A stretch of DNA of 64,000 nt from NCBI GenBank assembly GCA_024704765.1, contig JAKMXF010000347.1, positions 133,270-197,269 of the forward strand, given 5' to 3'. Position 1 is the stretch's first letter; the number at the start of each line of letters is the position of its first letter. The translations under genes were made by a program, and so were the position numbers. Below the pieces are notes generated by a model. It had not been told where the DNA came from. It was given only the letters and a program-made list of their open reading frames with translations, and searched no databases. This document shows positions 17,577-63,505 of this stretch, piece by piece. The stretch comes from Oopsacas minuta. Taxonomy: Eukaryota; Animalia; Porifera.

Positions 17577-20500
17577 ATGAGTATTAACGATATTAACGAG
17601 TGGTGTAGAAATGGAAATATTCAGCAGCTTAAACGCATGCATGAGAGAGGGGCATTAATCAGAAACCTAAACAACAGCACTGGCGTATACGGTTATAAGC
17701 CTCTACACGTGGCAGCTGCTAAGAATCAAAGAGATGTAATAGAATACCTATTGAGTATTGATGATCCAAGGAACCATATTGAAGGTAGAGCAAGCAGTAA
17801 CTACACGCCTCTACACCTGGCAGTATCTTTTGTGAATATTAATTGTGTAGAAGTATTATTAAGCCACAATTCAGACACAGAAGCTAAAGATATTTATGGG
17901 AAAACTCCGCTAAACATTGCAATAGAGAATGATAGCAAAAAGATTATTATCATATTGAAGAAAGAGAGTAAGTCACATATTTATATCCTAGCAAGCCCTC
18001 GGCTGGTAGTTTTGTACCTCGAGGATATCATTTAACCGATATTTTCTGATTTATCTATTTATATGACATTTCGGAATTGCGAAATTCGAATTCAAAAAGC
18101 ACAACCTTTCTTAACAAAACAAAGAGAACTAACAAGCAAGCAAACAAACAAACAAACAAACAAATATACACAGAAGAAATAAGAGTTAATGAATTATGTT
18201 AATACTCGCGGATTTCGTCTGCTCGCGAAAATTGGAATCAGCATACTCGATTACCCGAGTATAATTGTTTACTTTTCCTATATCGTCAGCAGAAAGATAT
18301 GTACACAGATCGTCTTCCTCTATTATTATAATACAAATTATATAAACAAAAAAACAAAAAACAAACAAACACACCTACACACAATAATTGAGTTTTAATA
18401 ATATTAATATAATCTCTTAATAAACTAAGCCTTATTTTTTGAATATTCTTCTCCTTTTAGGGTTAAATCGTACAATTTTAATCTACATTGATATTCCACC
18501 AGAAGATACAGCTGGGAAAGATGGGATACACAAACAAATCCGTGAATTAATGGACGATATTCGCACTAACCACAAGAAGGATATGGAAGCAGCATTCAAG
18601 AAGGCAATCGAAATTACTCTTTCGAAACTAAAGAAAATGGAGAACCCACGTATTACAAACGGAATTGACATTTTGGGGATGATCATAATTACAAACCGCA
18701 TGGTCGTCTATCTGGACAACATAGAATTCTGTTCAGATGCTAAGAATCTTTACATATTTGGTTGGTATCTAACACTCATAAGAGCAATTAACTATGACGC
18801 GAAAGAGGTAATTCACTGCCTTTTAAATATGAAAACTATTACCCTTCAAAATTCACATATCCATCCAGAATTCTTTCCTCATATAAGAAAGAGCAAAATT
18901 AACGACATGATTGAATATATCAAGCCAAATTGGGAGAGTATCAAAATTTCGCTCAAATTTCCGATTCGAATCGCGAATGCTTATAACTCTCACAACGTAT
19001 CACAATATTTGGAATGGATACTACCACAACACGGCATTTCAACATGGTGTGTAAAGCACCAATGTAATCCAGCTCAATTCATTCCAGAAGAACGTGATCA
19101 TTCATGTGATATCATTACTTTTGTCAACTGGTCTCATTTGAAAGTAGCTAAGTTGCCTCCTAAAGTCTTTGAAGGTCCTTTACCAAATGTTGAAAAACTA
19201 AGTCTTTCAAATAATGTTCTTAGGTGTGTCCCTCGTCAGTTAATTCACTTTAAGTCCATGCAATACTTAAATTTATCATATAATAATATAACTACCATGA
19301 TTCCTTGTCAGCTTCTAGCGCTAGATTCCTTGAAAAAATTAGATTTCTCGCATAACCAGATAACAAATATCTCACCGAACCAAAATGAAGGCAGTTTACT
19401 TTGCCAAAGTTTGGAAAAACTCATTCTATCGCACAATAATTTTAGGGAAATACGAAACGACTTTTCAATGCCAAATTTATCCCTCATTGATCTGTCAAAC
19501 AACCAACTAAAGAATTTTCCGGTATTCCTTTCGAATTCTATCACATTATGTGAGTTAAAACTTACAAAAAATCCTAATCTTAAGAGTTTGCCAGGATTCC
19601 TGGGAGATTTTGAACACCTTAATGACATCGAAATCGATCTCAAAAATTTCTCTCCTGCACTCTCAGTTAATACAAACAGGGATAATATTGCGAGAGATAT
19701 AAAGAAATGCTTGACAGGTGGTCGTCACATAAACGCATTAAAAGTGTTCTGTATAGGTGATAATGAGAGCATCAAGGTAGATTTCTTGAGAAGGTTGATG
19801 AATGAGAGAGATTTCCCTAGGTGTGACCTGGATATACCACTGCACACTTTCAATTGGGAAAACGCAAGTATTAATGGAGGAAACATTACAATTTGGAATG
19901 TACGAAATAAAAATATCGAAGTCACGTCTAAAGTGCTAAAGAATATTAGCGAACTAAGATCTGTAATATATCTGGTAGTTGATGCCGAAAAAGGTCCAGG
20001 AGAACATGTGAAAAAGTGGGTTACAGAGATAATTAAAATCAACGATTCATACTGGAAGTACGATTGGATAAGCTGTGTTAATGTTGTCACACTCGGATCT
20101 GCAGAAAAAAGCATTACTAAAAGCATGAAAATCTGCGAATATGATTTCACGTTATACACAGAAAGCCAAATTCGACAGGTTAGAGAAGAAATTTGCTACA
20201 ATAAATATAAATCCATCGTCTCTTTCAGGGAAAACAGGATTAATATCACTATTGAAGAAGAAATGATATGCTCTGATTACAATCAAATTTATCAAAGTTT
20301 TCTTGGACTAATATCAAAGAATAAGCTCAGTGAATTACGTGACCCCATTGTAGATAAAGAAAAATTTATAGGATATTTTAAAGAAACACCAGAATACGAA
20401 ACTGTTCAGTTGTTAGAAACCACAGGTCGTATTGTGGAGCTGCTAAAATTGTTAGAACGATTCGGTCTCATTGTGTATCTTGATGAGATACGGGACACAC

Positions 20501-23500
20501 CGATTGTACTCAAGCCCTGCGCCCTTTACAACAGCCTTATCAAAATAGTAACAGAAGATTTGTCCTATCAAAAACTTGGACTATTCTCAATGCAAAAATT
20601 CATTACTTACATAAAAACTGAGCCACCATCAATAATTATATTCCAAAACACTTATAGCTATATGCTACTTCTAAGGAAGTTGAATCTAATAATGGTATTG
20701 TCGAAGCAATATTTTATTGTACCTTCTAAACTCCCGAGTATTCAAAAGGAAATTAATATTGACCATGAATTTAGACCATCTTGGAAAACAACTCCAGTTG
20801 AAGAAGATGGTATAGATTATAATCATCGAATATTTCTTTTAAAACATATGTCTCGTGAATATTGCAATGAATTAATTGCTGATATTCTCTATGAAACTCC
20901 AATTCTCAGTGCTATAGTAACTAACAAACCTATGCAACCAAATGACCTTATATTTAATAACAAGCCTTCGGAGAAGATTAATCCAACAATTTTCTCTGGT
21001 ATCGAGCCAGCAAGAAGCCGGGCACATTCTTCAGATGATTTTGAATTGGTATCTAATGACAATAGCAGAACTGTTCAAGTTTGGAAAAACAATCTCTTAT
21101 ATGTTGATTCCAAAAATGCAATTAAACTACTAGTCAGAGAATATTCTGGTGGAAACGGAAAGGGCATTGAAATCGTTACAGCTAGAGATCCTTTAAAATT
21201 AGGAGATTCATTTCTTTTTAGGGTAAAAACGAGTATTTATCAGACATTTCTTGGTTTAGATGTTGTCGACCTTCTGGCTGTTCCTTACAAGCAGTTGAGA
21301 GATGAGAAAAATCCATATTTAATCGATTCATTTTACAAATATGCAAATTTGAGAAGTAATGTTAGATGTTGCGTAAGTTCTGGCTCCATTAGTAAAGAGG
21401 CTCTAATGACCTTTGCACCGGAACTCTCCATTGATCACAGTTACAATGGAATGAAGTTTCAGAATATACCTTATCAACCGAACGATCTGAGTACCAAACT
21501 TGGAGGTAAAAATAGTTGTGTGTACAGAGGTAGGTTTCAGAACGAATTAGTGGCGGTGAAAGAGTTCAGGTATGATCTTGGCAATTCAAAATTGCGTGTT
21601 CGTCATGAAATGCTAAAAGAAGCTAAATTGTTATCAGAGTATAGACATTCTTGTCTGATTAACATTATTGGAGTTTCCTCTGCCTCTTTATCTAGATGTT
21701 TTATAGTGTTAAAACTGGCACCATTTGGAGAGTTAGGGTCTTTTCTCAAGAAAAACAATCCTCTTAAGCCTCGTATCCTCTACTTCCGGTTTACTCAACA
21801 AATTGCAGCAGGACTTGATTTCCTACACACACATATAAAAGACGTTCCATTAATTCATCACGATTTGAAGCCGGAGAATATACTGGTGATTTCTGATCAA
21901 GTTGATGCTTACGTCAATGTTAAAATAGCAGATTTAAACATGTCAAAAAACAGAGCTGGTGTAGATGGGACTACAGGGTACCGAGCCCCTGAAATAGTGT
22001 CACATCATGCAATGGTTACTCATGACTATAAACTTGATGTGTATTCATTCGCATTAGTGTTGGTTAATCTAATATCCCATAGAATTCCATTTATTCATAT
22101 GAATGTAGCAGATACCAGCCTAACAGTAAGAAAGCTACGCCCAGTGTTAAATTGGCAATACTACTTCGAGAATGGCATGGTCTCTCTTCTCCCAATCATA
22201 CAAGCCTGTTGGAACCATCAGCCACAGGATCGACCGGATATGAAACCGGTATTAAACGCAGTATCCTCGCCTTCTCTACAATTCCTGTTTTCAAACAGAT
22301 CTCTCCCGACTAATTCTAGCTACAACCCGATGGCATCATGTGCTATACGAATTACAGAAAAAAAAGAACATCTATGCTATGCTTTCTCGACAACATACGA
22401 AGGATCAGCATTCTATACCAAGATATGTCTTTATGACGTAGCCAATAATCAAATTACAGAGAGATCATTTGAAGAATTTTACAGAAATAAAGTACTCATG
22501 CAAATGCACTCTCATAAGTACAATGTTGTTCTAACTCTACAAGGAACGAACCAAAAGGATGAACTAGTATGTTATATGGTACAATATAGTAATTTTATCG
22601 GGTCTGAGATGAATTTAGTTAATAGGGTGGAACTTCCAAGATATATATTCCTAGTCCAAGCCATGTGTATAGACGATAACAGGATCTATTTAGCATTGAG
22701 CACCAGCATTTATATTTTCAAAATAGATACTCTTGAGGAGGAGGCAGAAATTATTGTTGAGAATGACATACAGTGTATGCTATCATTAGGTAACGAATTG
22801 TGGGTATCAACACAGCCTTACCTCATTGAAAAAATTCCGTCTCTCAAGATTAGAATTTTTGATAAAGGAGAATTAAAGCAAAGTTTTGCAATTAAAGAAG
22901 ACATGGACAATCTGACGTGTATAGGCCAGATGGTACCGACAAACCAAGAAAAACGAGATGTACATCAAGCACAACAACAGGTCTGGTGTCTGGACTCATC
23001 CAAGCCAATAGTATTTATCTTCGATTCAGGAGAGAATAAATTTTCTGTTGGAGCTATTGATTTGAACAAATACCTGCCAGATGAAGCTAAATATTCTCAC
23101 GAGCTAGGAGAGAAGTACAACTATAAGAACACAAAGATTTGTCCATCAACCAATACAATGTGGATCTCTACACAGCATGGCTATATATTCATTTTCTCCA
23201 CAGGTACACAGACACAGGAATTAATCGTGACATTAAATGTGTTTCTTGGTCCGATCGTGTTCCTAACTCCGATCGAGATTGCCAGAGGCAGCATGGTGGC
23301 TTGTTGTGGAGAGGTAATTAGATAAGAGTTTTTATTATTAATAATGCGTACGTAAATATTATACGACATTGTAGCAACATATTACAAAGAGGTTGCTACA
23401 TTTTCGTAGAAACATATGGTGCTATAAAATTGATATGTACATATAACAAATTGAATAATATTTTTTGCAAACCAAAATTTGAAATATATAATTCTGTGTA

Positions 23501-23886
23501 TTTCTTAGGATTTCGTACATCCATTCTATAACTGTGAAGAGAAAAATTTCTATGAAATATTATCCTCTCAATCCAGAGATGGTAATTTTAATCGCAGTGA
23601 AGAAATTAAAAAACTAATATCTAATCAGAGACATAATGATAGGATATGTGAGGCACCCAAGAAGCATAATTTACCCAAGAAACATGACATAGTATTATGG
23701 GAAGCTTATAATGAAAATATCTACAGATTAGTTGAAATGACAAAGGAGGGTAAATTTTGGAAAACTGAGGAAGCGTTTAGTTATTCGTTATCAAAGGAAA
23801 TGTTGGAGGCTATCAATCTATCAGATAAAGATAATTACTTCTTGAGTGAAACTTACAGATCTCATGAAAATGCCATCACACTATGA
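17577..23886 (+). CDS. LRRK/ROCO-family protein: ANK - LRR - degenerate Roc - COR - Ser/Thr/TKL kinase - WD40-like; 3 coding exons 17577-17967, 18461-23313, 23509-23886 (~1873 aa)
   Basis: Ankyrin repeats (YKPLHVAA, YTPLHLAV, KTPLNIAI); donor GTAAGT 17968 (phase 1) and acceptor TTTTAG 18460; LxxLxLxxN LRRs; Roc-like KVFCIGDNESIK; COR motifs (YFIVPSKLP, QVWKNNLLY); kinase VAVK, HHDLKPEN, GYRAPE; donor 23314 and acceptor 23508 (phase 0) open a 125-aa last exon missing from the ORF track, TGA 23884-23886, AATAAA 23908. Summed exon length 5622 nt is divisible by 3. Confidence 0.88.
18141..18164 (+). repeat. (CAAA)6 microsatellite in ROCO intron 1
   Basis: Direct reading. Confidence 0.85.
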
Positions 23887-25014: not shown

Positions 25015-25024
25015 CTCTAGGAAA

Positions 25025-25115: not shown

Positions 25116-26035
25116 GATTCATAATCCTCGATCGGACAAACGAGCACATACGTAAATTATAGGAAGCTAGAATAGATAAAAATATCAAATCACCGCCTGT
25201 GCCGACGAAATTTCATTAAACTTATTATAGTGGGTTTTGAATCTATAATTTTCCACTAAAATAATTAAATTAGCAAAGAAATGTTTGATTGTATGTAAAT
25301 AATCGAGTTAGACATTTCAAAGTGTCAGATTCGAATAACTCCCCTGTTTACCACAAATTTAATGGTGGAAGTAAATGTCTAGGACAATTATGAAATTTTC
25401 CCAAAGGTGTGAAAATATGTTTAAAGCCTGTGTTAAAATGTGTGAATATAAAAAACTATAAATCTATATACATATACATAGGGGAGACACTTATATACTG
25501 TTTATACTATAAGTCAACCATTTAATACTGAGCCAATATAGAAAAGTCCCGCTTTTCGGACATGTATGAGGCTAATGGTCGCCAAAACTTGCCAAAAGCC
25601 TTAGTGCGACTGAACACGAATTGACCAGGTTGATGCTATCCGTCTGGAACGGTCCAAGATTTTGATCGTGCGGTCCGGACCTCCAGGTGATCCATGAAAT
25701 TCCCGAACCGTTGCAACACTGCTATACACACAATCCATATCGTCAAAAATTTTCAGGACGAAATACCGTAACCAGATTGCTTTTTAGGTAATTATATTTC
25801 CAAAAATGCCCAATTTGGAAGCTCTGTAAAGAGACGATTATTGTATATATACGTTAGCAAAATTGTGACCATGGGCTCTGAGGATGTTTTCTTACAAAAT
25901 AACAAAATTTTGTCATGATAAAAATTAGCACGTTCCAGAGTTATAGTAGTGATCATGGATGACTCATTTTTGTCAATATTCACCATAACTTGACAACAAT
26001 TTATATTATGACCAAATCAGCCTACAAACATATAG

Positions 26036-26203
26036 TATATACCTGACTTCCCATACCCTGATAATACAATTTGATATGATATCGCCAAAGGAAATTAAGT
26101 AGTCATCAATAATGCTAAATGGGGTAATATTCAGGATTGCGTCATAGTCGTAGGAGATATCAAATCGAAATGTATTATAAGGGTATGGGAAATCGGGTAT
26201 ATA
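26036..26203. mobile_element. TA-flanked MITE with ~40-bp imperfect TIRs
   Basis: TATATACCTGACTTCCCATACCCTGATAATAC... / ...GTATTATAAGGGTATGGGAAATCGGGTATATA; a second family member is at ~50887-51012. Confidence 0.75.
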
Positions 26204-26544
26204 CTAACATCGGCAATAGTGAGTTTGTTATATCATTGAGGGTTTTCGATTTATAAATAGGCATTGACGAAAAATTGCCACCCATGGCCACTACTGTAAC
26301 TCAAGGACCTGCAGACTTTAGCATTACAAATTTTTCATATGTTTACAAAGTATCGTTAGATCATTTCCTACATTAACTTTGAAATCAAAGATGCGATATT
26401 TAAGGTTCTACATGTCTTCAAAGATAGAGCAGGTTTTGAGGCATCATAATCTACATATCTGTATAATACATTTACTTGGGAATATAAGTACTGTTTGCGT
26501 AATAAAAACAATTATGTATACTCTACCATACACTACCATATCCC

Positions 26545-26725: not shown

Positions 26726-29700
26726 AATCTTAGCAAGAACCTTCATTAGATAATATTTTTCAAATTAGCTTGTCATCAGTCTAGTCAGGATTTGAGAAGG
26801 ATTTGTTTATCCACCATGTCTAATCATTGTCCTGATGTTGGGTGTATGTTCAGGACTGCCATACCAGCTGGGCTACCAGTAAGTGCCACAACATGCCCCT
26901 TTTGCCAAAAAAGTTTGGAATTAGTAGCAATTTTACCGATACCTGAAGATGATCTGGGAAAAGAAGATAACAAAGCACATGAAGATGATAAAGTGCAAGA
27001 ATATGTCAGAGCACAGGAAAATAATAGGGCACAAGAAGAGCCTGTGCTTGGAGAGAATAATCCTACTTCTGATCAACATGATTTCATTGCTTCTGAACCA
27101 ACACATAGGAAACTTAAACTCGTTATGTCTAATATCGAGTCAGATGCCTCTCTATCTCTACCATCTACACCATTCATTTCACCGGTACACACATTTGATC
27201 ATAATGCTGAGTATCATGGTGAACAGCCCAGAGGAGAGAATGTTTCTAATGTTAAAAAAAGGATCAAAAGTCTTTTTCGAAGAAAATCAGAATTACATTA
27301 TAATAACCGTACAAGGATGAAGCAACGACACGGACACAAGAGGCAATCTGTATTTGCGATTCATTTAGAATTACGAAGTCAAATGATAGGGAATAAGGAT
27401 ATACGTATTCAATTCAATACACTAATTCTCAGGGAATACTGTGAGCTGATAGATGAAATCAGTCTCCAGATTTACGATGACTGCCCAATTAAGAATTTTC
27501 AGACTACCTTTAAGAACTTTCAAGAATCAAATGTTGTGGAGATAAGTGGTTTTGAGTTCAATATTTTTCACGTTATCTTGAAATTTCCTCCAAAATATAT
27601 TTCTGATTTTCCGTACAAATATTGCTTGCAATTAAGATCAGGTGTTGATATCGATGAACATCTACAACATCCTTCAGACACCCAACTTTAACCGCTATTT
27701 TATCTGGGATGCTGCTGTAAGCCAAATTCATGATAATAAATATCAAAAATTTGATATGATGATACTACCGCAAATTCAGAGAGAGGGACCTATGGCCATA
27801 TCACGGAGTAATAAATTGTTTCAATTTACAAATGTCAAAAATAGACTAGTAGCATCATATCAAGCATTATTACCATCCAATTTTGGCTGTGGGTGCTCTC
27901 CAGAATGCCCCAACTTAGAGGATTACATAGAAAAATTCATGCATCGTGCAAAATCACTTTCTAATTTGTATCTACATGATCCGGATTTTGATGAATTGGA
28001 ACAATGGACAGATTCAAGTATCATAAAACTAGTTAAAGCTTGGATAATTAAATGTTATTCTCCTGAATATAATGCTACCTTAGATGACCAATCAATTATT
28101 GCTAAGTTCTATCTAGCATGTTGTCTGATAAATACTTACAGCATTCATAGTAATAGTTTGAATAAGCTAGTGATAGATATGATTGGGAATTCAATTCTAA
28201 CCATTTTTAGGAACGAAAGTTATACATTGAATGAAGCTATTTCTACAAATCCTGAGTTTAGAAACAAAATACAAACCGCACTCCATGAGTTTGTTTTAAT
28301 AGTGTGATGCTAAGCAAATATCCTAAAAAGCTATTACTACTAATTCCCATCTATCACATGATTACTAACCTCAAAGCTAGTGCTGTTTCATTACATGAAA
28401 AGTGTAGATACACAGAAAACGAATATTGGGGATTCCCTACTGATGTACAATTTTCTTGCCTAGAAAATATATCTTTTGATTCTGAAGAACTCCAATTAGC
28501 CCTTACCTTAGTCAAGTATGATGAACTTCTTTCGTATTCCATTGCTATATACACACTTAATGAAGGAAATGCGAAAAAATTTGTGAGCACTTTATCCACT
28601 CACAAGAATGTCCATTCCCATTGTCAGCTCTCATTAGTGTTTTATTATTCCGATTGAAGGTATCCAGGTCTAGTTCTAACCAAGACATCATTACTAAAAA
28701 ATATGATAAATTGACATCAGAAGTTATAAGGTCATTAAGTATTGCTTTCCAGGACGATTCTAAATTTCTTTTCGATGATATCTTTCGACTCATTCAGCTG
28801 ACTATCATTCTAGCAGTGCGGCTATCTACATACTTCGATCAAGAACAATTCGAGATCTGTTTAACATTAATTTCTGAAGCATATCAATACTGTTACCTTA
28901 AATCTCAACCTACAACTATCGTCCTCTCTGAAGAGATTTCAGAATTATTCACAGAATTTGTTATAAAGTGGTATAAGAATCAATTTAGAAAACGCGAAAA
29001 TCATATAAGGATGTTATAAAAGAAATTGAATTTTGGGAAAATATAATATCAAAATATTTCTCTCAGTCTACTGAATGGAAAGATAACTTCAGAAATTTCT
29101 TGAAAGATCGATTTACAGATACAAAAATAACAACAGAATACATAATCAAAGTCCTAACTCTTCAACCTAAACAAGACATATTGCAGGAACTTTTTATCCA
29201 TGAATTATATTCAAGATTAGCAAATTTAAAGTCTAAACAAGAAAAAGTGTCTATAGTCAAGCGTTTATATGAATATTTTTCTGAGATCAAACAACTAGGA
29301 AAATTGACTATAATATTTAGTCAGATATTACTTGATGAAAAGAAGACTTTTTGCCAAAACATTCACTGGCATTTTGTTACCTGGCCTTTATGGAGAATAT
29401 ATTTTTCCTTTCTCTCTTTAGAAAATATTGAACAAATTCTCTCTGAAGAAGCTATGGCTATGCTTGAAGATGCTAGTGTTCACTTTCTGTCTTTCTTAGA
29501 AACAATAAAACTTCAATCTATTAATGTAGGTAAGCTACAGCATATTGCTAAGAATAAAGGTTACTTCTCTGACATTATAACTCATTTCATACAGTTGAAG
29601 TGTTTATCCGGTAATGGATCTAAGGAAACTCTCGAAGAACTAGATGTATGTTTGAAAATGTTACATTGGTTCTTTGAGCAGATGCGCATGCTGAAAATAC

Positions 29701-50886: not shown

Positions 50887-51012
50887 TATATACCCGACTT
50901 CCCATACCCCTTGTAATATCTTTTGTCTGAATATCTCGTTCCAATATAACGACGCCCATATAGGGTAGTTTTCAAGATTACAAATATTCTATGTCAAAAT
51001 GTATTACAAAGG
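50887..51012. mobile_element. Second copy of the 26036 MITE family, right TIR truncated by another repeat
   Basis: Starts TATATACCCGACTTCCCATACCCC; ends ...AAAATGTATTACAAAGG, then switches to CAGACCTGTGAGAGGGG. Confidence 0.6.
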
Positions 51013-51959: not shown

Positions 51960-52109
51960 GTCAAGACTCTCACAAGACATGTTAATTTTAGGTTGAACTT
52001 TGTGCAGTTCACTTTTGCGAAATGTATCATAACGCTGTAATGACTGTTATCGATGGTTCTAACTTATCAAGATTCTTGCTATAGGGGATATCTCAATATG
52101 AGATAATTT

Positions 52110-52660
52110 GGGAGATTCCCATCACTTTCCTCAGAGTTATATATAATGACGTCACATTGCCCCTCCATATTTGGTGACGTAATCTTAATTTTTTTATTCC
52201 TCAGATTATATTCTAACTAGCCTACTTATGATTTGCAAACAAATGGCAATGCTGCCAAAATTTTCTGAGTTTCGTTTACATAAATTTACATTATTCTATA
52301 ATTTCTATTACTTATTACCTCTGACGAATTGTTTGAGATTTTCCAATATTAGACCCCTAACTTTTAGGCTTGGACTCATACAGTTGACGAATATGGTAAT
52401 ACTGGAGCTCTTACGTGGCTTTTGGTTTGTAATCTGGGCCCTTTATGCCTCAGGTATTTAGAAATTCTAGAATTTGAAATTTTGTAAAGCCATGATGACG
52501 TAATAATTCCATGATGAGTTAGTATTTGGTCAAAATCATGTCAAAACATGTGGCATATTGAGTGGTGCTGTGATTCCAATTTAAAACTTCTATCATGTAT
52601 ATTGGCTGAGCAGTGGTTAATATTGTGATTTTGGAATTCAAAAAGGTGACAATGACGTCA
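52110..52660 (+). promoter_or_regulatory. Cluster of candidate inducible-promoter motifs upstream of RNF213 copy 2
   Basis: kappaB consensus GGGAGATTCC 52110-52119; CRE TGACGTCA 52147-52154 and 52653-52660; CArG CCATATTTGG 52165-52174; TGACGTAA half-sites at 52175 and ~52496. Motif matches only. Confidence 0.35.
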
Positions 52661-53194
52661 TAATTTCGTATTAAGTGGGAGTTTTCGGTCAAGACTTTAA
52701 TTGTGTTTTAAAGTATGGATAGTATCTAAAGATTCCCAGTTCCAGATCTCGTAAACCAGGGAGGGTACTTTTGGCAATCCTCAAATGTGCCCGTTTGGGT
52801 GTATGATATATTATTAAGTGTCCCTATTATTGAATCATTGCTTAGCACGTACATTATTTTGCATTGGGAATATTTAATTACTATTAAAGATATTTTGATA
52901 TCCGCATTTATTATCAGGATATCGAATAATTGTGATACGTGTACTAATATCCGAATTCTATGGAATAGCAGCTTGCGCTTAAATAATAAATTTACCTCAG
53001 GTTACGAATCCTAAAGTTTTACTGTAGTATACTCCAAGCGATTCTCTGACCTATTTCATACTGTTTTAAGCATATTTACACCTTACTGTCAACTGTCTAA
53101 CTTTCTGACATTACCTGAGTACCCTATTTGAAAACCTATTCTATCAAATTAGCTTGTCATCTGTATAGTCAGATTTGGGAGGTTTTGTTACCAC

Positions 53195-56100
53195 ATGTCT
53201 AATATGTCTAATTATTGTCCTGATAAAGGGTGTTCGTTCAAGACTGCCATACCAGCTGGCCTGCCAGTAAATGCCACCATATGTCCATTTTGCCAAAAAA
53301 GTTTGGAACTAGCACCAATTTCACCTGTACAAGAAGATAATCTGGTAATTGACCCTCAACAAGGAGTAGAAATATTTGAAGGTGCAAAAAGTGAGGACAT
53401 TTCTAAATCTATCTCTGAAAGTGAGGAAAGTTTTGTAATTAATGAGCAACCACATTTACATGTACCTACTTCTACAACGCCGTCTGAAACACAATTGCTA
53501 AAAGATAACCTCTTACAGAATGATAACTCATCTCTCATATCAAAACCCGCATTAAGCGGTGAAGGCAGCCTTCCTGAAAAGTATAGTGAAAACAATTCTC
53601 CAATTCCTTCATCCGGTAATCAAGGAAAGCCTTCAGACATAGAAAATACATTTATTATTGAGTCACAAAGAGATAACAAGGCACAAGAGCGTAACCTGGC
53701 CCTAGAAGAGAACAAAGCTACTCCTGCTAAAAATGATTCTAGGGGTTCTGAATCTTCAGATGAAAATCCAATACCGCTATCATCGGATCAACAAAAGAAT
53801 CTGGTACTGGAATATAGAAATACACAAGAGAATCACCTGGCCCTTGATTCTGATGACGAGAATCAGATAGATCAACTTGCTAAACAGGCCAAAGGAGAAT
53901 CTGTTAAAAGCAAGTTCAAAAATTTTATTCTAAGAAAACCTGTGCCCTTATTTACCAACCGCAAAAAAAAGAAGGGACGAAGCAGACAGAAGAGGCATCC
54001 GGTAAATCAGATTCATTTTGGATTACGAAGTTTAATGGAGGGAAAAACGGATATACGTATTCAATTCAATACACTAATTCTTAGGGAATACTATGAGCAG
54101 ATAGGTGAAATCAGTCTTGAGATTATCGATAAGAACTTTGTCAATTTTCCATCTTATTTTAACAGCTATGACCAACCAAAAGAAGTGGAAATAAATGGTT
54201 ATGAGTTCAATATTTTTCACGGTGTCCTGATGTTTCCTACCAAATGTATATCCGATTTTCCATACAAATATTGCTTACATTTTAAATCAGGTCATGAGAT
54301 CTATGAACACTTACACCATGATTCAGACATCAACTTCAACCGGTATTTTAAATGGGATGATGATGCTGTAAACCAAATTTGTGATAATAAATATCAAAAA
54401 TTTGATATGATGATACTCCCGGAAATTAGGAAACAGGGAAACTCGATACTTTTTGGGCCTGATAATATAGTAGCTAGTAGTGATAGAGAGATTCAATTTT
54501 CCAATATCGATGATAGACTATTATCATCATTTCAAGCATTGCTACAATCCTATTTTCTCTCCGACTACTTTAAACATCGCACCAACTTAGAAAATCTTTT
54601 AGAACAATTTATATATTGTGTGAAATCACTCTCGAATTTCTATCTACATGATCCAGATGTTAATGATTTGCAACGATGGGATGAGTCAAATCTAACAACT
54701 AAACTAGTTAAAGCTTGGATAATGGAATATTATTCTTCTAAAACAAATGCTACCTTAGATGACCAATCAATTATTGCTAAGTTCTATCTAGCATGTTGCC
54801 TGATAAATACTTACAGCATTCATAGTAATAGTTTGAATAAGCTAGTGATAGATATGATTGGGAATTCAATTCTAACCATTTTTAGGAACGAAAGTTATAC
54901 ATTGAATGAAGCTATTTCTACAAATCCTGAGTTTAGAAACAAAATACAAACTGCACTCCATGAGTTTGTCTTTAAAAGTGTGATGTTAGGCAAATATCCT
55001 GAAAAGCTATTACTAGTAATTCCCATCTATCACATGATTACTAACCTCAAAGCTAATGCTGTTTCATTACATGAAAAGTGTAGATACATGGAAAACGAAT
55101 ATTGGGGATTCCCTGTTGATGTACAATTATATTCCCTAGAATATATTTCTTTTCATTCTGAAGAACTCCAATTAGCCTTTACCTTAGTGAAGTACGATAA
55201 ATTTCTTCCATATACTATTGCTATATACACACTCAATGAAGGGAATGCAATAGATATGTGTGAATACTTTATCCAATCACACGAATGTCCATTATCAGCC
55301 CTTATGAGTGCTTTATTGTTTCGATTGATGGTATCCAGGTCTAGACCCAATCCAGATATCAGTGTTAAAAAAGATGACAAATTGATAACAGAAGTTCTTA
55401 AATCATTAAGTATGGCTTTCAAGGGCGAACCTGAATTTCTTGTAGATGATATTTATCGACTCAACAATCTGACTATCAATCTTGCACTGAAACTTTCAAC
55501 AGACTTCAATCGAAAACAATTCGAACTATGTTTAACACTAATTTCTGAAGCATATGAATATTGTTACACTGAATCAGGAGCTAACGCTACTATTTCCTCT
55601 GAAAATATTTCAGAATTATTCAATGAGTTTGTTATAAAGTGGTATGAGTTTCATATTAGAAAACAGGAAATGTCATATGAAGATTTACTATTTGAATTGG
55701 ATTTTTGGGAAAATTTATTATCAGTATATTCCTTCTCTCAATCTATTGAATGGAAAATTAATTTAAGAAATTTCCTGAAGAAACGATTTACAGACACAAA
55801 TATATTGTTAGAATACTTAATCAAAATCCTAACTCTTCAACCTACAGATAACTTAATGCAAGAAATACTCATCAACGAACTTTTTTCAAGAATAGTAGAT
55901 TTATACTCTAAAGATAGAATACCAATAGTGAAGCGTTTATTTCACTATTTTTCGGAGAATAATCAACTGCAAAAATTAAACATAATATTTAGTCAAATAT
56001 TACTTGATGAAGAGAAGACTTTTTACCAAAATATTAACTGGCATTTTGTTAGCTGGGACTTATGGGATATATATTTTTCCTTTCTCTCTTTAGTAAATAT

Positions 56101-59100
56101 TGATCAAATTCTCTCTAAAGATGCAAAAATTATGCTGGAAAATGCTCGAGGACAATTTTCATTATTCCTAGATGCAATTACTGGCCATTCTATAACTGTT
56201 GGAAATCTAAAACAAATTGATAAGAATAAAGATAGCTTCTCAGTGCTTATATCTATTTTCATACAGTCAGTAGCATTATCTAAAAATTTGGACAAACTAA
56301 CTCACATGGAACTAGATGTATGTTTGGAAATGCTAAAATGGTTCTTAGAGCAGATGGACATGCTTAGAACACTTTATAGATTTACTGAAAAATTCGATGA
56401 GATTAATGATGAAAATATCTCAAAATTTTTACCTTTGACTTTCGATGGTCACGAAATAAGAATGCTCTGTTCTAGCGGAGAGAAATTACAATTATCTATT
56501 ATATCACATCCCGATATAACAAAAATCGTAAACTTTGAACATTTCAAATCATTATGCACGATAAGTGAATCAATACAAGAATCCTCCGTAATTACTGAAG
56601 TTTTTAAGGATGTCAGCAATGGAAGGGGTATACAAATGGATGAGTTTGATATATCAGATTTCTATAATCACGTTTGGTTACCTGCTTGGGATATTTGTAT
56701 TCTTCTTGTTAAAAATATTTCCAATGAATCCATACTATTATCAGAATTGTCCAAATATTTCAAAGTCACTGAAAAATATGAAGAAATAGAAAACGAACTA
56801 ATCTTACTGGATTCTGAGTGTGAACATTATCAAAATACTCCAAATCAAGTGAAAAAATCTTTCAAATCTAGCGCTAATAAAATTCATATCTATTTCACTC
56901 TTCTACGGCGTTCTCAAGTTGCAACTCTTATCTGTGAGCTAAAAGAAAAGTTCTCAATTAAAACCAACTTTGAGAGCATAGAAAAATTAAAAAACGCTAG
57001 CGATATGTATTATAATAAAAAACTATCAGTAATGGATGCTAAAGTAGGTGAATTAGCAAATGATCTTGGAATACTCTCTTACAATCTCGAAGTAATACAG
57101 GCTGTTATTGAGAATATTGCTTTCATAAGATGGGTAAAGGAGAATATGATTGACTTAAATGAAGTGAAAGCTTTTGTCGATATATCTCTAACAGCCTGTG
57201 AAGGTAATCCAGTGGAAACAGACAGAATTACATGTTTCAGTTCTGTTTGTAGTAACTTTTCTCCTTTCATATTTGGAATTAACGAAAATACAAGTTATGA
57301 AACTCTCATCACAAGATGTAAACAAGTAATTGAGACTGTTGGAAAGAATGAAAAATTAACTGTGCTGCTCGGGCAGGTCGGAAAAAATGTAACATTTTGG
57401 GATGAAATGAAACGATCTCATGGTGCAATAGAAGAGACTACATTGGTAGAGCTGGATAACTTGATGAAATCTGGAGTTTTCATTTTGAAGGTTGGAGATT
57501 CATCCAATCTTTGTGATATAGTGAGTCTAAGAGTTGAGAGAGAAAACGAAAATGAAAAATTTTACAGTCTAGAACAGTTGAAAGAGTTTCGAAGTAAACT
57601 TATGCTAGTAGTAAGCAAGAATGAACAATCAGGGAATAGACCTGGCCCAAATAGTTATGAGAAATCTCAACTATTTACACTAAAATTTGACAAAATAATA
57701 GAGATAGCAAAAATAGTTATCCAATTAACAGAGAGTGATCATCAGGGATATCTGAAATACCTCATTAACTTAACTGAAGCTGAAACAAGGTTAGAAGAAA
57801 TCCACTCAAAACTCAGTTCAATACTTCAGGTTTGGAGGAATTCAATTGAAGAAGCTCGTAATGCACATTATTACTTGAACTACTATACTATATCTCAGAT
57901 AGCATTACTCCAAAAAGGTATCAAATCATTTATTGATGGGGGAAAAGATTCAGATCGAGAACAGCTATATCATCTACTCAGCCTGTTGAATTTTGAAGTT
58001 ACTAAAAATGAGCTACAACAGGCATTTAGAAAATGTGACTACACCTCTGAATATCTCAATCAGCAGCCATGTCTTGCTGAATCCAGCAGCAACTTCAGTA
58101 AAACGGAAATCCAACTTGCAAAGTCGGTAAAAACGGATGCTGGTGTCGAATTGAACATTATAAAGGATGCCATGTTGGATATGAAGAGATATCAAAGTAG
58201 CAATATTCTCTCGAAAAAATCGATTCTATATTGGTATGAAAAACATAAAACACAACCCAATTCATCATGTAGACCATTTCCAGATACAGAATCAAAATTT
58301 CTCCAAATCAAAATATCCTGCACAAATGCGACTCAAATGAAAACAAGTGTGGATTTTAATAAATTGGGAAGTTTTCTAACAGAAATATTCAGATCACGTA
58401 CTTCCAAAATCTTAGCAAAAAGAAATTTACCCTCCGATTTGAAATATGGAACACCAAATCTAGTTGTCATACCATCAAGTGAGATTTTAGAATTTGTCCT
58501 CTCTCTCTACCTGTGTGATAATGATAAATTTCCTTTGCCATTTTGCCATGAAGTGTTGTTTTGTACTGATCAAACAACCAATGAAGAGGTAGAGATCTTT
58601 TTCCGACGAGCATTGACAGAACATGAAGCAAGCGTCTCGTATATATTTTGCATGGTTAATATAGAAAACTTGAAATACGATGTTGCGGTTGAAAGTTATA
58701 CAGAATTCGAAAGTTTAGGAAACAACAGACCCCGAGATTGTTCATACAAACTTGTATTGATATGTTCAGAAGAAAATGAAGGATTCTCTTATTTAGCAGC
58801 TGCGTTTGAAGGCTACAAGAGATCAGTTCTTGTACTCAATGAAACAAAAGAATTTACAGATACTTTAAACAGGAGAATTTCTAGTGCCTACAAAAACAGA
58901 CGGTCTTATTGGCTTGTTGACAAGGAGAAGTCTAGAGTCAGAATTGTGGCATCAAATAGTTCGGGTGCAGGTAAATCTCTATATATTCGGAATCTCAGGT
59001 CTGACATGTTAAGTCAGGGAGTAGTCCGTGTGGATGAGATAGAACAAGCAGCTGTCACTGTTGCTATTCACGGGAAGCAAGCTTCGGAGGAACATCTAGC

Positions 59101-62100
59101 TGAACAGCTACTGAGTAGGAACATATGTGGTGTGGAGCATGGAGTAATGTTCCATGTAGATATTGCTTCTACCGTTCAGTGGGGCCTAGAACCAATGCTC
59201 TTTAAGTTACTTGTATTAGGTGGTATCAGCAAGAGTACAGGTGAGTTCTGGCACTGTAGACACAAAGATTATTATGTTGTCGAAATAACATTAACCTCTG
59301 ATCAGAATGCTTTAGCGAGATTTTCTCAACTTTTTCCAAATGTACAATGTGTTCAGCCTTCTGATGCACTTGGAATCACTGCTAATATTGGAACACAGAC
59401 CATTGATTTAAATGAATTGAGAAGTGAACAATATCAGAGAGTTAATGCATACCTGAAGCTTCTTGAAAAAGGTGTGGACTTGGATACTTTTGTGTTTCAA
59501 CCATCAGTAACATATGATAGAGTTGATCACATTGACTGCTTGAATAGATCCTTAAAGCATTGTGGGATAGCCCAACCGTCTTGGTCTGAGGTACGAAATT
59601 TCACTAGTTTTCTTAATAAACAACTCACAGATTGTGACAATTCTGATTATTGTCAATCTGGAGTAATGGGGCAAGAATGGAAAGGTTTCAAATCATTTGT
59701 TGTAAGATTCATGCTTCACATGTCTAGGGATTTTGCAACGCCTTCTCTGATGTCATATTCCGAGCTAGATCCTAAAGATTTGACCAAGTTTCAGGTACTG
59801 AATGAACGCAGGTGGGAGAATAACACACATCCATATATATTCTTTAACCCGGATGGACATACTATGACTTTTCTTGGGTTTCATATTACAGAACAAGGAC
59901 ATTTACTAGATTCAGATAACCCATCATTCGTTATCGAAAACAACATAATGCATCCAAATCTTTTCCAAATCTTAACTCGCAACAGGGTTATGCTTCAGGA
60001 GAATTATCATCAATTTGATAAATTACAAAAGATTTCGAAACTAGTCAGTGTTATGAATTTAAGTTGTTTAGCAGATCCAGATCCTGAGTATGTTTTAACT
60101 CTCGACAATATGAGAAAGATTCTAGCTATTCTGATGCGATTCCATTGCAACATACCAGTAGTGATAATGGGAGAGACAGGTTGTGGAAAGACACGTCTCA
60201 TTCAGTTCATGTGTTCATTACAAGCTTTACAGACAGGAGCTACTAACATGTTAATACTGAAAGTACATGGTGGTACTACTGAGAAAGATGTAATGACTAA
60301 AGTAGAAGAAGCTGAGGCGCTAGCTATGAAGAATTTCCGTGAACACGATATTGATACAGTATTGTTTTTTGATGAAGCTAACACGAGTCCAGCCATTGGT
60401 CTAATCAAAGAGATTATGTGTGACAGGAGAATGTATGGTAGACATATCAGTAGCGACATTAGACTACAGTTCATTGCAGCTTGTAATCCTTATCGTAGAC
60501 ATACAAAGGAGATGTTGAACAAGCTGAGTACTGCTGGTCTTGGATTCTTCACCAAAGCAAGTGAGACCACGGATAGACTGGGAGATATTCCTCTCCGTGA
60601 GTTAGTGTACAGGGTAATTGAGCTTCCTGCTAGTATGCGTCCATTGGTGTGGGATTTCGGTCAACTGAGTAAAACTATAGAAGAGACTTATACACGTGAG
60701 ATAGTAGCAAAACACCTCCGAGATCGCAACAGTCCAATACAAGCACGTGATAAGATAATTAGTGTTGTAAGTAATGTGCTTGCTGGTGCACAGAACTACA
60801 TGAGAGAGAGAAAGGATGAGTGTAGCTTTGTGAGTTTAAGGGATGTAGAGAGAGCTATGCGAGTCATGCTATGGTTCTATCATAATTTGAAGCATTTTAA
60901 TCCTAAAAAGGACTTATTAAATGAAGTCGAGGGAATTGAAGTTGCAGCCGAGGATGTCCCAGTTGTGATGAAAATTGAAAGTATCAATGACATTGACTAC
61001 ATAACATACAGCCTTATTCTGTCATTAGCTGTTTGCTACAGAGCCAGACTTCAAGAAAGAGATGATTTTGATATTAATATTGTTCGACGTTTCCAACATC
61101 CTCTCACGCCAATTAGAGATCACAAGGTTATTCATAATGAAGTTGACAGATGTCAACAGCTGATACTAGATGAGATGACCGTGGAAGCTAATATCGCTAA
61201 GAATAATGCTCTGAAAGAGAATGTATTTATGATGTTTGTGTGTATTGAACTCAAGATTCCTCTTTTCGTCATTGGTAAGCCAGGTAGCTCCAAATCTCTT
61301 GCAAAATCTATCATTTCTAATTCAATGCAAGGTAGGCGGTGTCCAGACGGAAGTATTCTACAGAACTTTAAGCAAATCCAGATTATGTCATATCAGTGTA
61401 GTAAGCTGTCTACTGCAGATGGAATAATTGGAGTGTTCAAGAGTTGCAGAAACTTACAAAACAAGACGGGATCTGATGCATTTACAGCTTGTGTAGTTCT
61501 AGAAGAAGTAGGTTTGGCAGAAGATTCACCTCTGCTTCCGCTCAAAGTATTACATCCTCTTCTAGAAGATAGCAATTATGGTTATGATCAAATTGAAACG
61601 AAACAAACCGATAAAGACGATAATGTTGATGAACTTAAGAATAGTGTGGCATTTATTGGAATTTCTAACTGGGCCCTTGATCCTGCCAAAATGAATAGAG
61701 GAATAATGTTGTCTCGAGGAGAGCCAGATCTTAACGAATTAATCATCAGTGCTGAAGGAATCTGCGAATCCGCAAGCAATCAGCCAGAAATTCATCGTAG
61801 TATTGTTAATAGAATCCCATCTCTGGCTAAAGCATATCATTACCTTACTTCAAATCAAGTTAATCATCAAGATGAAGAAGAAAGAACAAATTATTTTGGG
61901 CTGAGAGATTTTTACAGTTTAATAAAGATGCTTGTTTTCATTTGTAACGAAAGAAAGTCTCGTTTAAATCGAGCTATCTTATGCCATGCTGTTAAACGGA
62001 ACTTTGGTGGAGTATCATGTATAGATACTGTTAGTGTATTTAATGAACAAGTGCAATTACCAGAAGACCATCGAGATGGTCCAGATTCTTCTCCTCTAGG

Positions 62101-63505
62101 ATTAATAACAGCTAACTTGGCCAATCTTTCTCGCTCTTTCCACGGAGAGACTCGTTATCTCCTGTTATTTACTGAGAATTATGCTGCTCTTAACATCTTG
62201 CTACTCTCACCAGACATGTGGCCGAAACAGCAAGACATTAGAAATATCCGTGTCATATTTGGATCTAGCTTTCCATGTGACCAGGAGTACTCTGCAGTTT
62301 GTCTTAACATCAATAGGATAAAGATGTATATGGAATCTGGTAAAACTATCATTTTGTTGAATCTTGAGAATCTCTATGAATCTCTGTATGATGCTCTGAA
62401 TCAGTACTACATGGTATTGAATAATCAAAGATATGTAGATCTGGGGTTAGGTACCCATCGAATGAAGTGTCGTATTCACCAAGATTTCAAACTGATTGTA
62501 GTGGCCGACAAGGAAACTGTACAGGAAAGATTTCCTACTCCTCTCATTAATCGACTTGAGAAACATATCCTTGCGATGTCTACGGTGTTATCTGAAAATG
62601 ATGTTAGGATTTTACAACAACTAGCTGGATGGGCAAAAAGATTCTCTACCATTGATAAGTGTCAATCTATAGGATTCAATAATAGGGACACCTTTACTGA
62701 GGGTGACTGTTTTATTGGCTTTCATCATGACACTCCTTCTTTCATTGTGTTCCACATGATGAAGGAGATGTATCCAACCACTTGTTCAAAGATTGATAAC
62801 GATGCAGTCTTCGAAAGATGTATAACTCTGTTGTTAAGAATGGCTACAACAGATGCTGTCTTACGTGTAAAGAACAGTCTTCTATCTAATCAGTCAGAAA
62901 GGATAATAGCAGAATATTTCAGACTTCACTTAGGTAGTCTCGAAGAGTACCTAAGACAAATACTAACTAGTATATGTAAGCATGAAATAGGAGCCCATCT
63001 CACACTCGCGACAACACATTCAAGAATATTGACAGGCAAGGATGTAGATCAATTAAAACAGCGTCTGTCCACAGATAGGGGTAAACTAGAAATAACAAGT
63101 CTCTCACTACAACAGATTCAGACAGAACAACAATACTCTCGTGAGATTCAAGAGTTCTTGAGAAGAGATACAGAGATTGAAATAGTTTCTCACAAAAAGA
63201 TATTGCTGATATTGTGTGAGAGAGGAGAAGCTAATACAAAGCTGATTGCTTGTGCTCGCCAAAAGGTAGTAGATGAGTTGAAAGACTGGAAAGAAGAGAG
63301 GGGCGAGAGTAAATGTGAAATATTTATAGTATTCTTGATTTTACTGAAAAGACATGTACACGGAAGTAAATTTGCAAGTTTTTGTGGAGGAAATTGGAAC
63401 ACAGTGCATATTGATGATATTCGTTCACTCTACTCTACAGAGTTACCGCCTATCTCTATTTTGTTTGGGAAACCAATATGGAAACTATTTGAGGAACATG
63501 ATCAG
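53195..63505 (+). CDS. RNF213: RNF213 (mysterin)-like AAA+ ATPase/E3 ligase, copy 2, first coding exon (3437 codons, intact); gene continues beyond the window
   Basis: Open frame with the same N-terminal Cys motif, CBM20-like domain and six-AAA core (SNSSGAGKS, GETGCGKT, LFFDEANT, GKPGSSKS, DPAKMNRG). Phase-0 donor CAG|GTTTGT at 63506 is at the position homologous to copy 1 intron 1 (36976). Start may be 53195 or 53204. Confidence 0.93.

Follow-up and report, generated by a model that had tools for sequence, protein, structure and literature searches.

Introduction

In mammals, the LRRK and RNF213 families both act at damaged or pathogen-containing endolysosomes, and LRRK-type kinases and RNF213 are disease genes. 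The ubiquitylation of LPS in mammals is driven by the RZ finger of RNF213 and not by its RING. Pull-downs of TMEM55B, which serves the LRRK2 pathway as a lysosomal platform, were enriched in RNF213, although it was left there as an unvalidated candidate interactor (PMC12393467). Data from primates suggest that RNF213 itself may be a pattern sensor and that its N-terminal region has been under positive selection (PMC11549300). Moreover, lineage-specific expansions of RNF213 have been described in invertebrates, for instance in symbiotic bivalves (PMC9993606).

The genome of the glass sponge Oopsacas minuta (Hexactinellida) is available as a hybrid Illumina/PacBio draft polished with Pilon using Illumina reads, and it contains 16,413 genes (PMC10280926). 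The O. minuta genome paper mentions neither LRRK nor RNF213, and no paper linking both families genomically was found in a literature search. The DNA analysed here (the window) comprises the last 64 kb of contig C347, so that the end of the window is also the end of the contig. The original prediction proposed that a ROCO kinase gene and a tandem array of RNF213 genes were duplicated and rearranged together in this region, and that they may form a sensor-kinase/ligase module of cell-autonomous immunity. The analysis indicates that the locus is probably a case of inherited microsynteny, reshaped by local RNF213 duplication and rearrangement, rather than a proven co-evolving kinase-ligase module.

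Organisation of the locus

The features of the locus are collected in Table 1. The conserved block that had been noted beside it is present on its left side and consists of genes for glycogen debranching enzyme, an NHL-repeat protein, O-GlcNAcase and a sortilin/VPS10-FN3 protein. A Fes/Fer-type tyrosine kinase (C347:13427-16435) was considered as a second linked kinase and rejected, since its SH2 and FCH domains set it apart from ROCO proteins. In the public annotation the genes of the locus are split or truncated; the spliced proteins used here are exclusively the public models P0003, P0002 and P0121.

At the other side, the contig stops in a repeat 474 nt past the long exon of RNF213-2, and the palindromic units found there are the likely cause of the assembly break. 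Parts of the locus recur on small contigs, the ROCO 3' end on C207 and RNF213 pieces on C251, C254, C225 and C239.

Table 1. Features of the window (positions counted from its first nucleotide).
Feature	Position	Strand	Evidence
O-GlcNAcase (NAGidase) gene	8013..10421	-	Pfam PF07555, E 1e-83; syntenic anchor
Sortilin/VPS10-FN3 gene	11105..16054	-	Pfam Sortilin-Vps10, E 9e-74; syntenic anchor directly upstream of ROCO gene
ROCO/LRRK-like exon 1 (ankyrin repeats)	17577..17966	+	Pfam Ank_2, E 2e-17; P0121 residues 1-130
ROCO/LRRK-like main exon: LRR, putative degenerate Roc and COR, kinase, β-propeller	18463..23313	+	Pfam; GT donor after 23313
ROCO/LRRK-like last exon (T)	23509..23883	+	P0121 residues 1749-1873; AG acceptor, TGA stop
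High-copy foldback (MITE-like) element, ~700 nt, with hairpin 26033-26206	25723..26433	.	Dozens of genomic copies, both strands at same loci
RNF213-1 N-arm	26817..30815	+	ATG 26817 (start codon context); tblastn matches that switch between frames
RNF213-1 stalk end and AAA ring	30820..36996	+	Open 2058-aa ORF; E = 0 vs mouse, human RNF213
RNF213-1 E3 module and C-terminal domain, at least 15 small exons, no RING	37440..48124	+	P0003 maps, 96-100% identity
RZ-type zinc finger of RNF213-1, intron-split	44817..45367	+	PF20173, C347:178086-178142, 178553-178636
Inverted, degenerate copy (T') of the last ROCO exon with 3' flank	48732..49066	-	In-frame stops
Interspersed-repeat cluster	50634..52696	.	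Numerous copies in the genome, 73-94% identity
RNF213-2 long exon, 3443 aa: N-arm, stalk, AAA ring	53195..63526	+	100% identical to P0001
Palindromic ~30-nt repeat units	63783..64000	.	99-100% copies on C48, C341, many others; inverted repeats listed

The LRRK-like ROCO gene

The predicted ROCO-type gene is found on the plus strand (17577-23883), and it is the only LRRK-like ROCO gene at the locus. Its product shows the layout of the LRRK subfamily (ANK, LRR, a putative degenerate Roc and COR, kinase and β-propeller), in which Pfam recognises Ank, LRR_8, Pkinase and, weakly, Beta-prop_LRRK2 (E 1.8e-4). The public model P0121, named 'LRRK1-like [Oopsacas minuta]', gives the three exons of Table 1; the 195-nt intron before the last one takes out the stop codon of the ORF, and six relative loci keep this last exon 3' of their LRRK ORF, with 40-70% amino acid identity. 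The best PDB matches of the kinase domain are LRRK1 (E 1e-31) and LRRK2, and the full-length hhalign comparison with LRRK1 is collinear through Roc-COR (E 2e-41). The Roc-COR region compared alone with LRRK1 by hhalign gives no significant match (E 0.073), and the Pfam COR-A match lies below threshold (E 0.0064; 16.8 bits against a cut-off of 35.3). In Foldseek searches with residues 405-1000, the top 16 matches are all Roc-COR proteins (E 8e-6 to 9e-4), which are taken as qualitative support only, the query being a low-confidence AF2 model (pLDDT 43.6; Foldseek TM <0.2).

The motifs for GTP binding in Roc, G1 (GxxxxGK[S/T]), G3 (DxxG) and G4 (N/TKxD), were not found in the ROCO protein: the aligned positions read GDNESIKV at G1 and NVRN at G3, and there is no G4 motif. 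This loss is common to all eight hexactinellid orthologues. In the kinase, the catalytic residues Lys1041, Asp1142, Asn1147 and Asp1165 are invariant across the eight proteins, which also keep HHD for HRD and DLN for DFG, and the G-loop (GxGxxG) is degenerate, with its first glycine only. Orthologues were found only in hexactinellid assemblies. The gene is a divergent, probably fast-diverged, single-copy LRRK-like ROCO gene and, judging from these motifs, its product most likely acts as a GTP-independent scaffold or kinase.

The RNF213 paralogues and their turnover

Two RNF213 paralogues are encoded on the plus strand, as had been proposed; in phmmer searches both copies match the mouse and human RNF213 structures with E = 0 and 1152-1244 bits, and over 6TAX, 7OIK and 8S24 the scores span 1152-1542 bits. 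RNF213-1 spans 26817-48124 and consists of an N-arm with five single-base frame breaks, an intact AAA core and a multi-exon E3 module. Pairwise alignment to the second copy places the breaks near 27681, 28294, 28574, 28999 and 30811, and there is a 264-nt in-frame deletion near 27001. Several of the breaks sit in short homopolymers. Some or all of them could be assembly errors. The stretch 37440-48124 had been taken for intergenic DNA, which is wrong: the small exons of the E3 module (P0003) are there, including the RZ finger (PF20173, E 2.7e-18 in P0003), and the 3' half of RNF213-1 takes up about 11 kb of what had passed for a 16-kb gap. As for RNF213-2, its long exon matches the RNF213 structures (E = 0) up to about human residue 3487; the gene is cut by the contig end and continues past it, its 3' part, where an RZ finger would be expected, lying off the contig. 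A candidate for this continuation is C144 (about 782-795 kb, minus strand), on which an orphan E3 module is located.

The Walker A motifs of AAA3 and AAA4 and the Walker B of AAA3 are intact, with the sequences GETGCGKT, LFFDE and GKPGSSKS present. For the AAA4 Walker B, both window copies have VVLEE (D to E) and all the other copies VVLDE. No RING family match was detected in P0003 by Pfam, and the position of the RING is a clean gap of about 55 residues against Oscarella in three O. minuta paralogues. By analogy with mammalian RNF213, the paralogues are most likely RING-less AAA+/RZ-finger proteins working as RZ-dependent ubiquitin ligases, and they would have rapidly diverging N-arms within an expanded, turnover-prone family.

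A third copy lies on the same contig outside the window (C347:46915-75723). A genome search with a 1943-aa piece of RNF213 as query revealed a heavily broken copy on C303 and fragments on small contigs. In the tree, the two window copies are sisters, and the next clade is formed by the LRRK-adjacent RNF213s of L031 and L033. The tandem copies are spaced by about 26.5 kb. Their DNA identity is a mosaic of 55-98% with dS values of 0.18-1.26, a pattern indicating gene conversion between them. With an overall DNA difference of about 20% and numerous in-frame indels, they are true paralogues. The birth-and-death turnover previously proposed for RNF213 is supported by the sister relationship of the window copies, the frame breaks of the first copy, the broken copy on C303 and the small-contig fragments, and gene conversion is supported by the mosaic of identities.

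The inverted ROCO copy and the interspersed repeats

An inverted ROCO relic on the minus strand was also part of the original prediction. An inverted copy (T') does exist there, but it covers only about 335 nt and contains neither kinase nor LRR nor Roc-COR sequence. The similarity pairs 23568-23932 with 49066-48732 (76% identity over ~335-374 nt, with a 185-nt core at 89-91%), and the T/T' sequence has two copies only in the genome. T' was detected with the three-exon public model P0121 as query. A relic spanning the kinase, LRR or Roc-COR was rejected, since tblastn of the 1628-aa ROCO ORF against the window returned the ORF itself alone. T' lies 0.65 kb past the last RNF213-1 exon. A search for it in a head-to-tail relative (L037, L038) found none, so either it is confined to the O. 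minuta lineage or it has eroded elsewhere. T' is read here as a rearrangement scar.

High-copy foldback (MITE-like) repeats are abundant, in agreement with the density announced for the region (691 and 877 first-look candidates, two intergenic stretches). The hairpin of the ~700-nt element has arms of 79 nt that are 77% complementary. In the cluster before RNF213-2 there are a foldback type of ~400 nt, elements ~175 and ~230 nt long, and one of ~300 nt that lacks terminal inverted repeats; a search of 52300-52800 gave no inverted repeat.

Conservation and genomic context of the ROCO-RNF213 linkage

The adjacency of ROCO and RNF213 holds in related sponges, being present in all five closer hexactinellid assemblies, which represent two lineages. 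The gene order O-GlcNAcase, sortilin, ANK/LRRK-like and RNF213 is found in these five; the O-GlcNAcase gene flanks the locus in four of them, the flank of L039 having ended before reaching it. The sortilin gene adjoins the LRRK-like gene in six relative loci, and the sortilin-ROCO and O-GlcNAcase-sortilin pairs are conserved as well as the ROCO-RNF213 pair. RNF213 lies head-to-tail in L031 and L033 and tail-to-tail in L032, L034 and L039; with such orientation flips between lineages, the two genes have neither a promoter in common nor a constant transcriptional arrangement. The LRRK identities point to three roughly equidistant hexactinellid lineages. A more distant hexactinellid has two LRRK-like paralogues: around one of them there is no RNF213 within 10 kb, and the locus of the other is cut by a contig end.

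Genome-wide, the co-location is not repeated: none of the ~11 other COR-A-positive ROCO loci is near RNF213, and none of the other RNF213 loci (~10-12) is near a ROCO gene. The neighbours of these RNF213 copies are unrelated (Sas10, PDZ/L27, aminotransferase, BTB, TBC RabGAP, DnaJ). An ORF with weak LRR similarity upstream of the RNF213 on C299 was examined as a ROCO fragment and rejected, since nothing in it resembles the ROCO gene. The chance that a ROCO gene flanks an RNF213 locus is p ~0.02 before allowing for post-hoc selection, calculated from 12 ROCO genes, ~24 RNF213 flanks and 16,413 genes (PMC10280926). The idea that both genes were duplicated and rearranged together, and with it a co-duplication of RNF213 with ROCO, is not supported: of the ROCO gene, 6.3 kb long, only about 0.3 kb has been copied, the locus has one ROCO copy and the other loci are unlinked.

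Origin of the locus

In the ancestral state, a single-copy LRRK-like ROCO gene would already have been placed beside RNF213, downstream of O-GlcNAcase and sortilin, and at least three hexactinellid lineages would have inherited this neighbourhood from their common ancestor. On the way to O. minuta, the neighbouring RNF213 was duplicated in tandem, after which the copies swapped patches by gene conversion and the proximal one gained the five breaks of its N-arm. A rearrangement would have clipped the last ROCO exon and left the 0.3-kb inverted scar just 3' of RNF213-1.

It is very improbable that the tandem pair, the patches of near identity within it, the breaks in frame or the relic are artefacts of collapsed or chimeric paralogues or haplotigs. 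Such an origin would be consistent with the contig end in a repeat close to RNF213-2, with the small contigs that repeat parts of the locus, with the breaks within homopolymers and with patches of 93-98% identity that could be chimeric. Nevertheless, the divergence and in-frame indels of the copies are those of true paralogues, the relic differs from its source by 24% and is hence not a recent assembly duplicate, the same gene order appears in independently assembled relatives, and the draft was polished with Illumina reads (PMC10280926).

A different possibility is that the linkage is under selection, the LRRK-like protein being a sensor or regulator kinase for the adjoining RNF213 ligases in cell-autonomous defence. 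The adjacency has survived at least one inversion and persists in all five closer relatives despite the orientation flips, which is also expected under selection for linkage and, as an observation, counts against inherited microsynteny; the same applies to the nominal chance of ~0.02 and to the common site of action of both families at mammalian endolysosomes. RNF213 among the candidate TMEM55B interactors points in the same direction. This functional module is unlikely, however, considering that the equally conserved sortilin and O-GlcNAcase genes imply a high baseline of microsynteny, that RNF213 was not co-duplicated with ROCO and their other loci are unlinked, and that the distant hexactinellid has an LRRK-like gene without a close RNF213. 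Besides, Roc is a pseudo-GTPase, the G-loop of the kinase is degenerate and its DFG is replaced by DLN, the primate data suggest that the pattern sensor may be RNF213 itself, and the hypothesis was made after the locus had been seen. Nothing in the sequence points to a coupling of ROCO activity to RNF213. It is quite improbable that in glass sponges a GTPase-dead LRRK-like kinase and RING-less RNF213 ligases are an ancient defence pair held together by selection; if it were true, an LRRK-RNF213 axis at endolysosomes would be older than bilaterians. In the same way, a functional linkage would be a genetic hint of cooperation between LRRK-type kinases and RNF213. As matters stand, the locus chiefly illustrates, and cleanly so, how the RNF213 family changes in an early-branching animal, with tandem duplication, gene conversion, decay of the N-arm and loss of the RING while the RZ finger is kept; this last combination fits the RZ-driven ubiquitylation of LPS in mammals.

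Comparison with known systems

The O. minuta ROCO protein shares with LRRK1 and LRRK2 the N-terminal ANK and LRR and the C-terminal kinase and propeller, and probably the whole domain order ANK-LRR-Roc-COR-kinase-propeller, its full-length alignment with LRRK1 being collinear. It differs from them in a Roc without G1, G3 and G4, in a kinase with HHD, DLN and a single G-loop glycine, and in its COR-A and isolated Roc-COR similarities, which remain below the Pfam cut-off and not significant, respectively.

As in the invertebrate RNF213 expansions of symbiotic bivalves, several paralogues have arisen by local duplication, whereas the present case belongs to glass sponges and adds RING loss, gene conversion between tandem copies and a ROCO neighbour (PMC9993606). 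As in primates, where positive selection acts on it, the N-terminal region diverges fastest (PMC11549300). Compared with vertebrate RNF213 (mysterin; PDB 6TAX, 7OIK, 8S24), homology covers the stalk and the dynein-like AAA ring of six units at about 40-44% identity, and the AAA3/AAA4 Walker A and AAA3 Walker B motifs are kept, as is the RZ-finger E3 module in RNF213-1. Unlike the vertebrate protein, the alignable O. minuta paralogues have no RING and both window copies carry the D to E change in the AAA4 Walker B; the family occupies ~10-12 loci in a 61-Mb genome, and the N-terminal part is encoded by a single 10-kb exon while the E3 module is distributed over many small exons.

Gene content of the locus

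The window (C347:133270-197269) lies on a contig of 197,269 bp, so that its right edge is the contig end, in an Oopsacas minuta genome assembly of 365 contigs and 61.46 Mb. The published draft combines Illumina and PacBio reads and was polished with Pilon; its genes average 1.59 introns, interspersed repeats occupy 34% of the genome, and neither RNF213 nor LRRK is named in the paper (PMC10280926).

Features of the LRRK-like/RNF213 locus (window positions unless stated)
Feature	Position	Strand	Remarks
Glycogen debranching enzyme gene	873-5513	-	long open frame
NHL-repeat gene	5751-7064	-	long open frame
O-GlcNAcase gene	8013-10421	-	long open frame
Sortilin/VPS10-FN3 gene	11105-16054	-	long open frame
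ROCO exon 1	17577-17966	+	mapping of P0121 (1873 aa)
ROCO exon 2, long	18463-23313	+	mapping of P0121
ROCO exon 3, last	23509-23883	+	mapping of P0121
Source of relic	23568-23932		ROCO third exon and 3' flank
Foldback of ~700 nt, high-copy	25723-26433		genomic copies match both strands
RNF213-1 start	26817	+	ATG
RNF213-1 core	30820-36996	+	open frame, 2058 aa
AAA4 Walker B D->E, copy 1	~34834-34863	+	residue 1339 of P0003
RNF213-1 3' half	37440-48124	+	at least 15 small exons (P0003 mapping)
RNF213-1 RZ finger	44817-45367	+	
Inverted ROCO relic	48732-49066	-	
Tandem array	50046-50234		at least 4 copies of a 40-nt unit; spacer between relic and RNF213-2
Several high-copy elements	50.6-52.7 kb		
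Element of ~300 nt	52394-52696		
RNF213-2 long exon	53195-63526	+	single open exon, 3443 aa
AAA4 Walker B D->E, copy 2	~61376-61405	+	residue 2767 of P0001
Palindromic 30-nt units	contig end		

The NHL-repeat gene shares 26% identity across 269 aa with another one, located between the two tandem RNF213 copies of contig C177 (C177:549138-550469, minus strand); the presence of such a gene beside RNF213 arrays could be a coincidence or a recurring neighbourhood. Regarding the repeats, the MITE label given in the original prediction is fair for the foldback types, which are MITE-like; in the ~300-nt element a terminal inverted repeat was not found. DNA transposons make up 15% of the O. minuta genome (PMC10280926), so the repeat density at the locus is not unusual.

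The LRRK-like gene

In the ROCO gene (public model P0121, 'LRRK1-like') the stop codon of the long open frame is spliced out by a canonical GT..AG intron. Amino acid identities of 40-70%, found 3' of the LRRK frame in six relative loci, indicate that the third exon is a genuine coding exon conserved in relatives. Pfam recognises ANK, LRR and protein kinase domains and, weakly, an LRRK2-type beta-propeller, and the closest solved structures to the kinase domain are LRRK1 and LRRK2. A profile of eight hexactinellid orthologues is collinear with LRRK1 over the whole stretch of LRR, Roc-COR and kinase (E 2e-41); the Roc-COR part on its own is not significant against LRRK1 (E 0.073), and the Pfam COR-A match is sub-threshold. 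AlphaFold gives a poor model of residues 405-1000 (pLDDT 43.6), yet its top 16 Foldseek matches are all Roc-COR proteins; this middle region likely derives from Roc-COR. The Roc GTP-binding motifs have been lost (G1 is GDNESIKV, G3 is NVRN and G4 is absent), as in all eight orthologues. Of the kinase's catalytic residues, Lys, Asp, Asn and Asp are retained; the glycine loop is degenerate and the motifs read HHD and DLN, features invariant across orthologues. Besides, a short contig (C207:2-220) begins with the final 27 codons of the long exon at 100% identity and continues with the following 60 nt of the ROCO sequence at 95%; it probably represents a haplotig or redundancy in the assembly.

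Structure of the two RNF213 genes

RNF213-2 matches mouse and human RNF213 through the end of the AAA ring (E = 0). The contig ends 474 nt past its long exon, within a palindromic repeat, and the E3 module is consequently missing from it. An orphan RNF213 E3 module is found on C144 (~780.2-795.0 kb, minus strand). Its first exons (794840-794959 and 793804-794265) are 88% identical to copy 1, and its RZ finger is located at 787041-787136; as no AAA core was detected on C144, this module is a candidate continuation of RNF213-2. Beside the module, and oriented oppositely to it, is sequence 95% identical to the 3' flank of RNF213-1. The strongest RZ-finger match of the genome (74 bits; C302:284717-284851, minus strand) belongs to a single ORF of 2058 aa which is not an RNF213 locus and may encode a ZNFX1-like protein.

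The start codons of RNF213-1 and copy 2 share their context, and the N-arms of the two are collinear, except that the one of RNF213-1 has five single-base indels (near 27681, 28294, 28574, 28999 and 30811) and one in-frame deletion of 264 nt. The P0003 exons show that about 11 kb of the 16 kb originally read as inter-gene space after the core are the 3' half of this gene. No RING match to P0003 was obtained with Pfam. In P0002, P0003 and P0026, compared with Oscarella, there is a clean gap of ~55 residues at the RING position (window 41536-43073) whereas the RZ finger is kept, the RING being missing from all three O. minuta paralogues that can be aligned. Amphimedon models likewise lack a RING match in the precomputed Pfam list. 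Both window copies have VVLEE instead of VVLDE in the AAA4 Walker B motif, a change absent from the other O. minuta paralogues, Oscarella, Nematostella and Amphimedon.

Turnover of the RNF213 family

The genome contains ~10-12 RNF213 loci: C347 has three, C177 a tandem pair, and C299, C66, C144, C49 and C162 one each. In addition, C303 carries a copy that is broken at several places, and some small contigs hold fragments. In an AAA-core tree the window copies are sisters, and the nearest clade includes P0033 and P0046, the RNF213 genes adjoining the LRRK-like gene in two relatives. The identity between the window copies is mosaic (55-98%), with patches of 93-98% DNA identity within sequence of 67-80% (27.9-36.0 kb against 54.6-62.5 kb); dS ranges along the gene from 0.18 to 1.26, and dN/dS values are 0.5-0.8 for the N-arm and 0.2-0.6 for the core. 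At the sequence level, the mosaic identity and uneven dS indicate an old duplication followed by gene-conversion patches, with an N-arm that is relaxed or diversifying, and suggest that conversion between the tandem copies was repeated.

Conservation of the ROCO-RNF213 adjacency

The nearest orthologues of the LRRK-like gene belong to other hexactinellids with assemblies in ENA, with five loci in two lineages. Identity is 86% within group A and 80-84% within group B, and ~60-66% between the groups and between either group and O. minuta. As to synteny in related sponges, proposed as a check in the original prediction, the order sortilin, ANK/LRRK, RNF213 is kept in all five loci, with O-GlcNAcase upstream in four. 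This order, common to O. minuta and both groups, makes the adjacency ancestral for at least three lineages. RNF213 is arranged head-to-tail in the group A loci but tail-to-tail in those of group B, hence the adjacency outlived at least one inversion. The adjacency would thus represent a single ancestral event rather than repeated association, and it appears no better conserved than the housekeeping neighbours. A species further removed (46-48% identity) has two paralogues. One has retained sortilin upstream and is followed by a retrotransposon and the contig end; RNF213 is absent within 10 kb of the other. LTR-retrotransposon ORFs (RT/RNase H; gag aspartic protease) flank both paralogues in this assembly, ERZ20067936 (L035:18066-20975, L036:5-1222), and one of these elements occupies the site of RNF213 in other species.

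Within O. minuta, none of the ~11 other ROCO loci (COR-A detection) has RNF213 nearby. No second ROCO was found by tblastn of the ROCO protein in 30-70 kb around the C177, C299 and C66 RNF213 copies and in all of C347, the only extra match, to a Fes/Fer-type tyrosine kinase, reflecting similarity common to kinases in general. One or more adjacencies would be expected by chance with a probability of ~0.02 (12 ROCO genes, ~24 RNF213 flanks, 16,413 genes); this figure is not corrected for the fact that the locus itself prompted the hypothesis.

Origin of the relic and interpretation of the locus

The inverted relic is 76% identical to its source overall and 89-91% across 185 nt, and contains in-frame stops. 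Its sequence occurs twice genome-wide, leaving aside the redundant C207, and tblastn gave no further ROCO ORF matches in the window besides the ROCO ORF itself. It lies 0.65 kb past the last RNF213-1 exon, a spacing that mirrors the geometry of the three tail-to-tail relatives, where the last exons of LRRK and RNF213 face each other over 0.4-1.6 kb; in one head-to-tail relative the relic was not found. An ancestral tail-to-tail RNF213 inverted with staggered breaks, duplicating the breakpoint sequence, fits the relic. So does a tandem duplication unit starting in the last ROCO exon with a short inverted template switch at the junction; a point for the latter is that copy 1 and copy 2 are preceded by collinear low-copy segments (24496-24718 and 50213-50431; 69% identity). 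Under either origin the relic is a breakpoint by-product comprising 5% of the ROCO gene, a small rearrangement scar that would derive from the gene's 3' exon.

ROCO does stand beside two RNF213 genes as first described, but the relic, with the last exon and 3' flank alone copied, is not a second ROCO gene. The birth-and-death turnover of RNF213 is supported by the family loci, broken copies and sister pair, with concerted evolution to be added, whereas joint duplication of ROCO and RNF213 is not supported, as other RNF213 loci have no ROCO neighbour. The locus is quite probably inherited microsynteny in which RNF213 has undergone tandem duplication, gene conversion and partial decay within the O. 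minuta lineage. A functional kinase-ligase module of the LRRK-like protein and RNF213 is improbable. No report of an LRRK-RNF213 gene linkage or module was found in the literature. RNF213 does appear in a preprint, in a list of candidate but unvalidated interactors of TMEM55B, which serves the LRRK2 pathway as a lysosomal platform (PMC12393467). In primates, the N-terminus is the part of RNF213 under positive selection (PMC11549300), and RNF213 expansion is known from symbiotic bivalves (PMC9993606).
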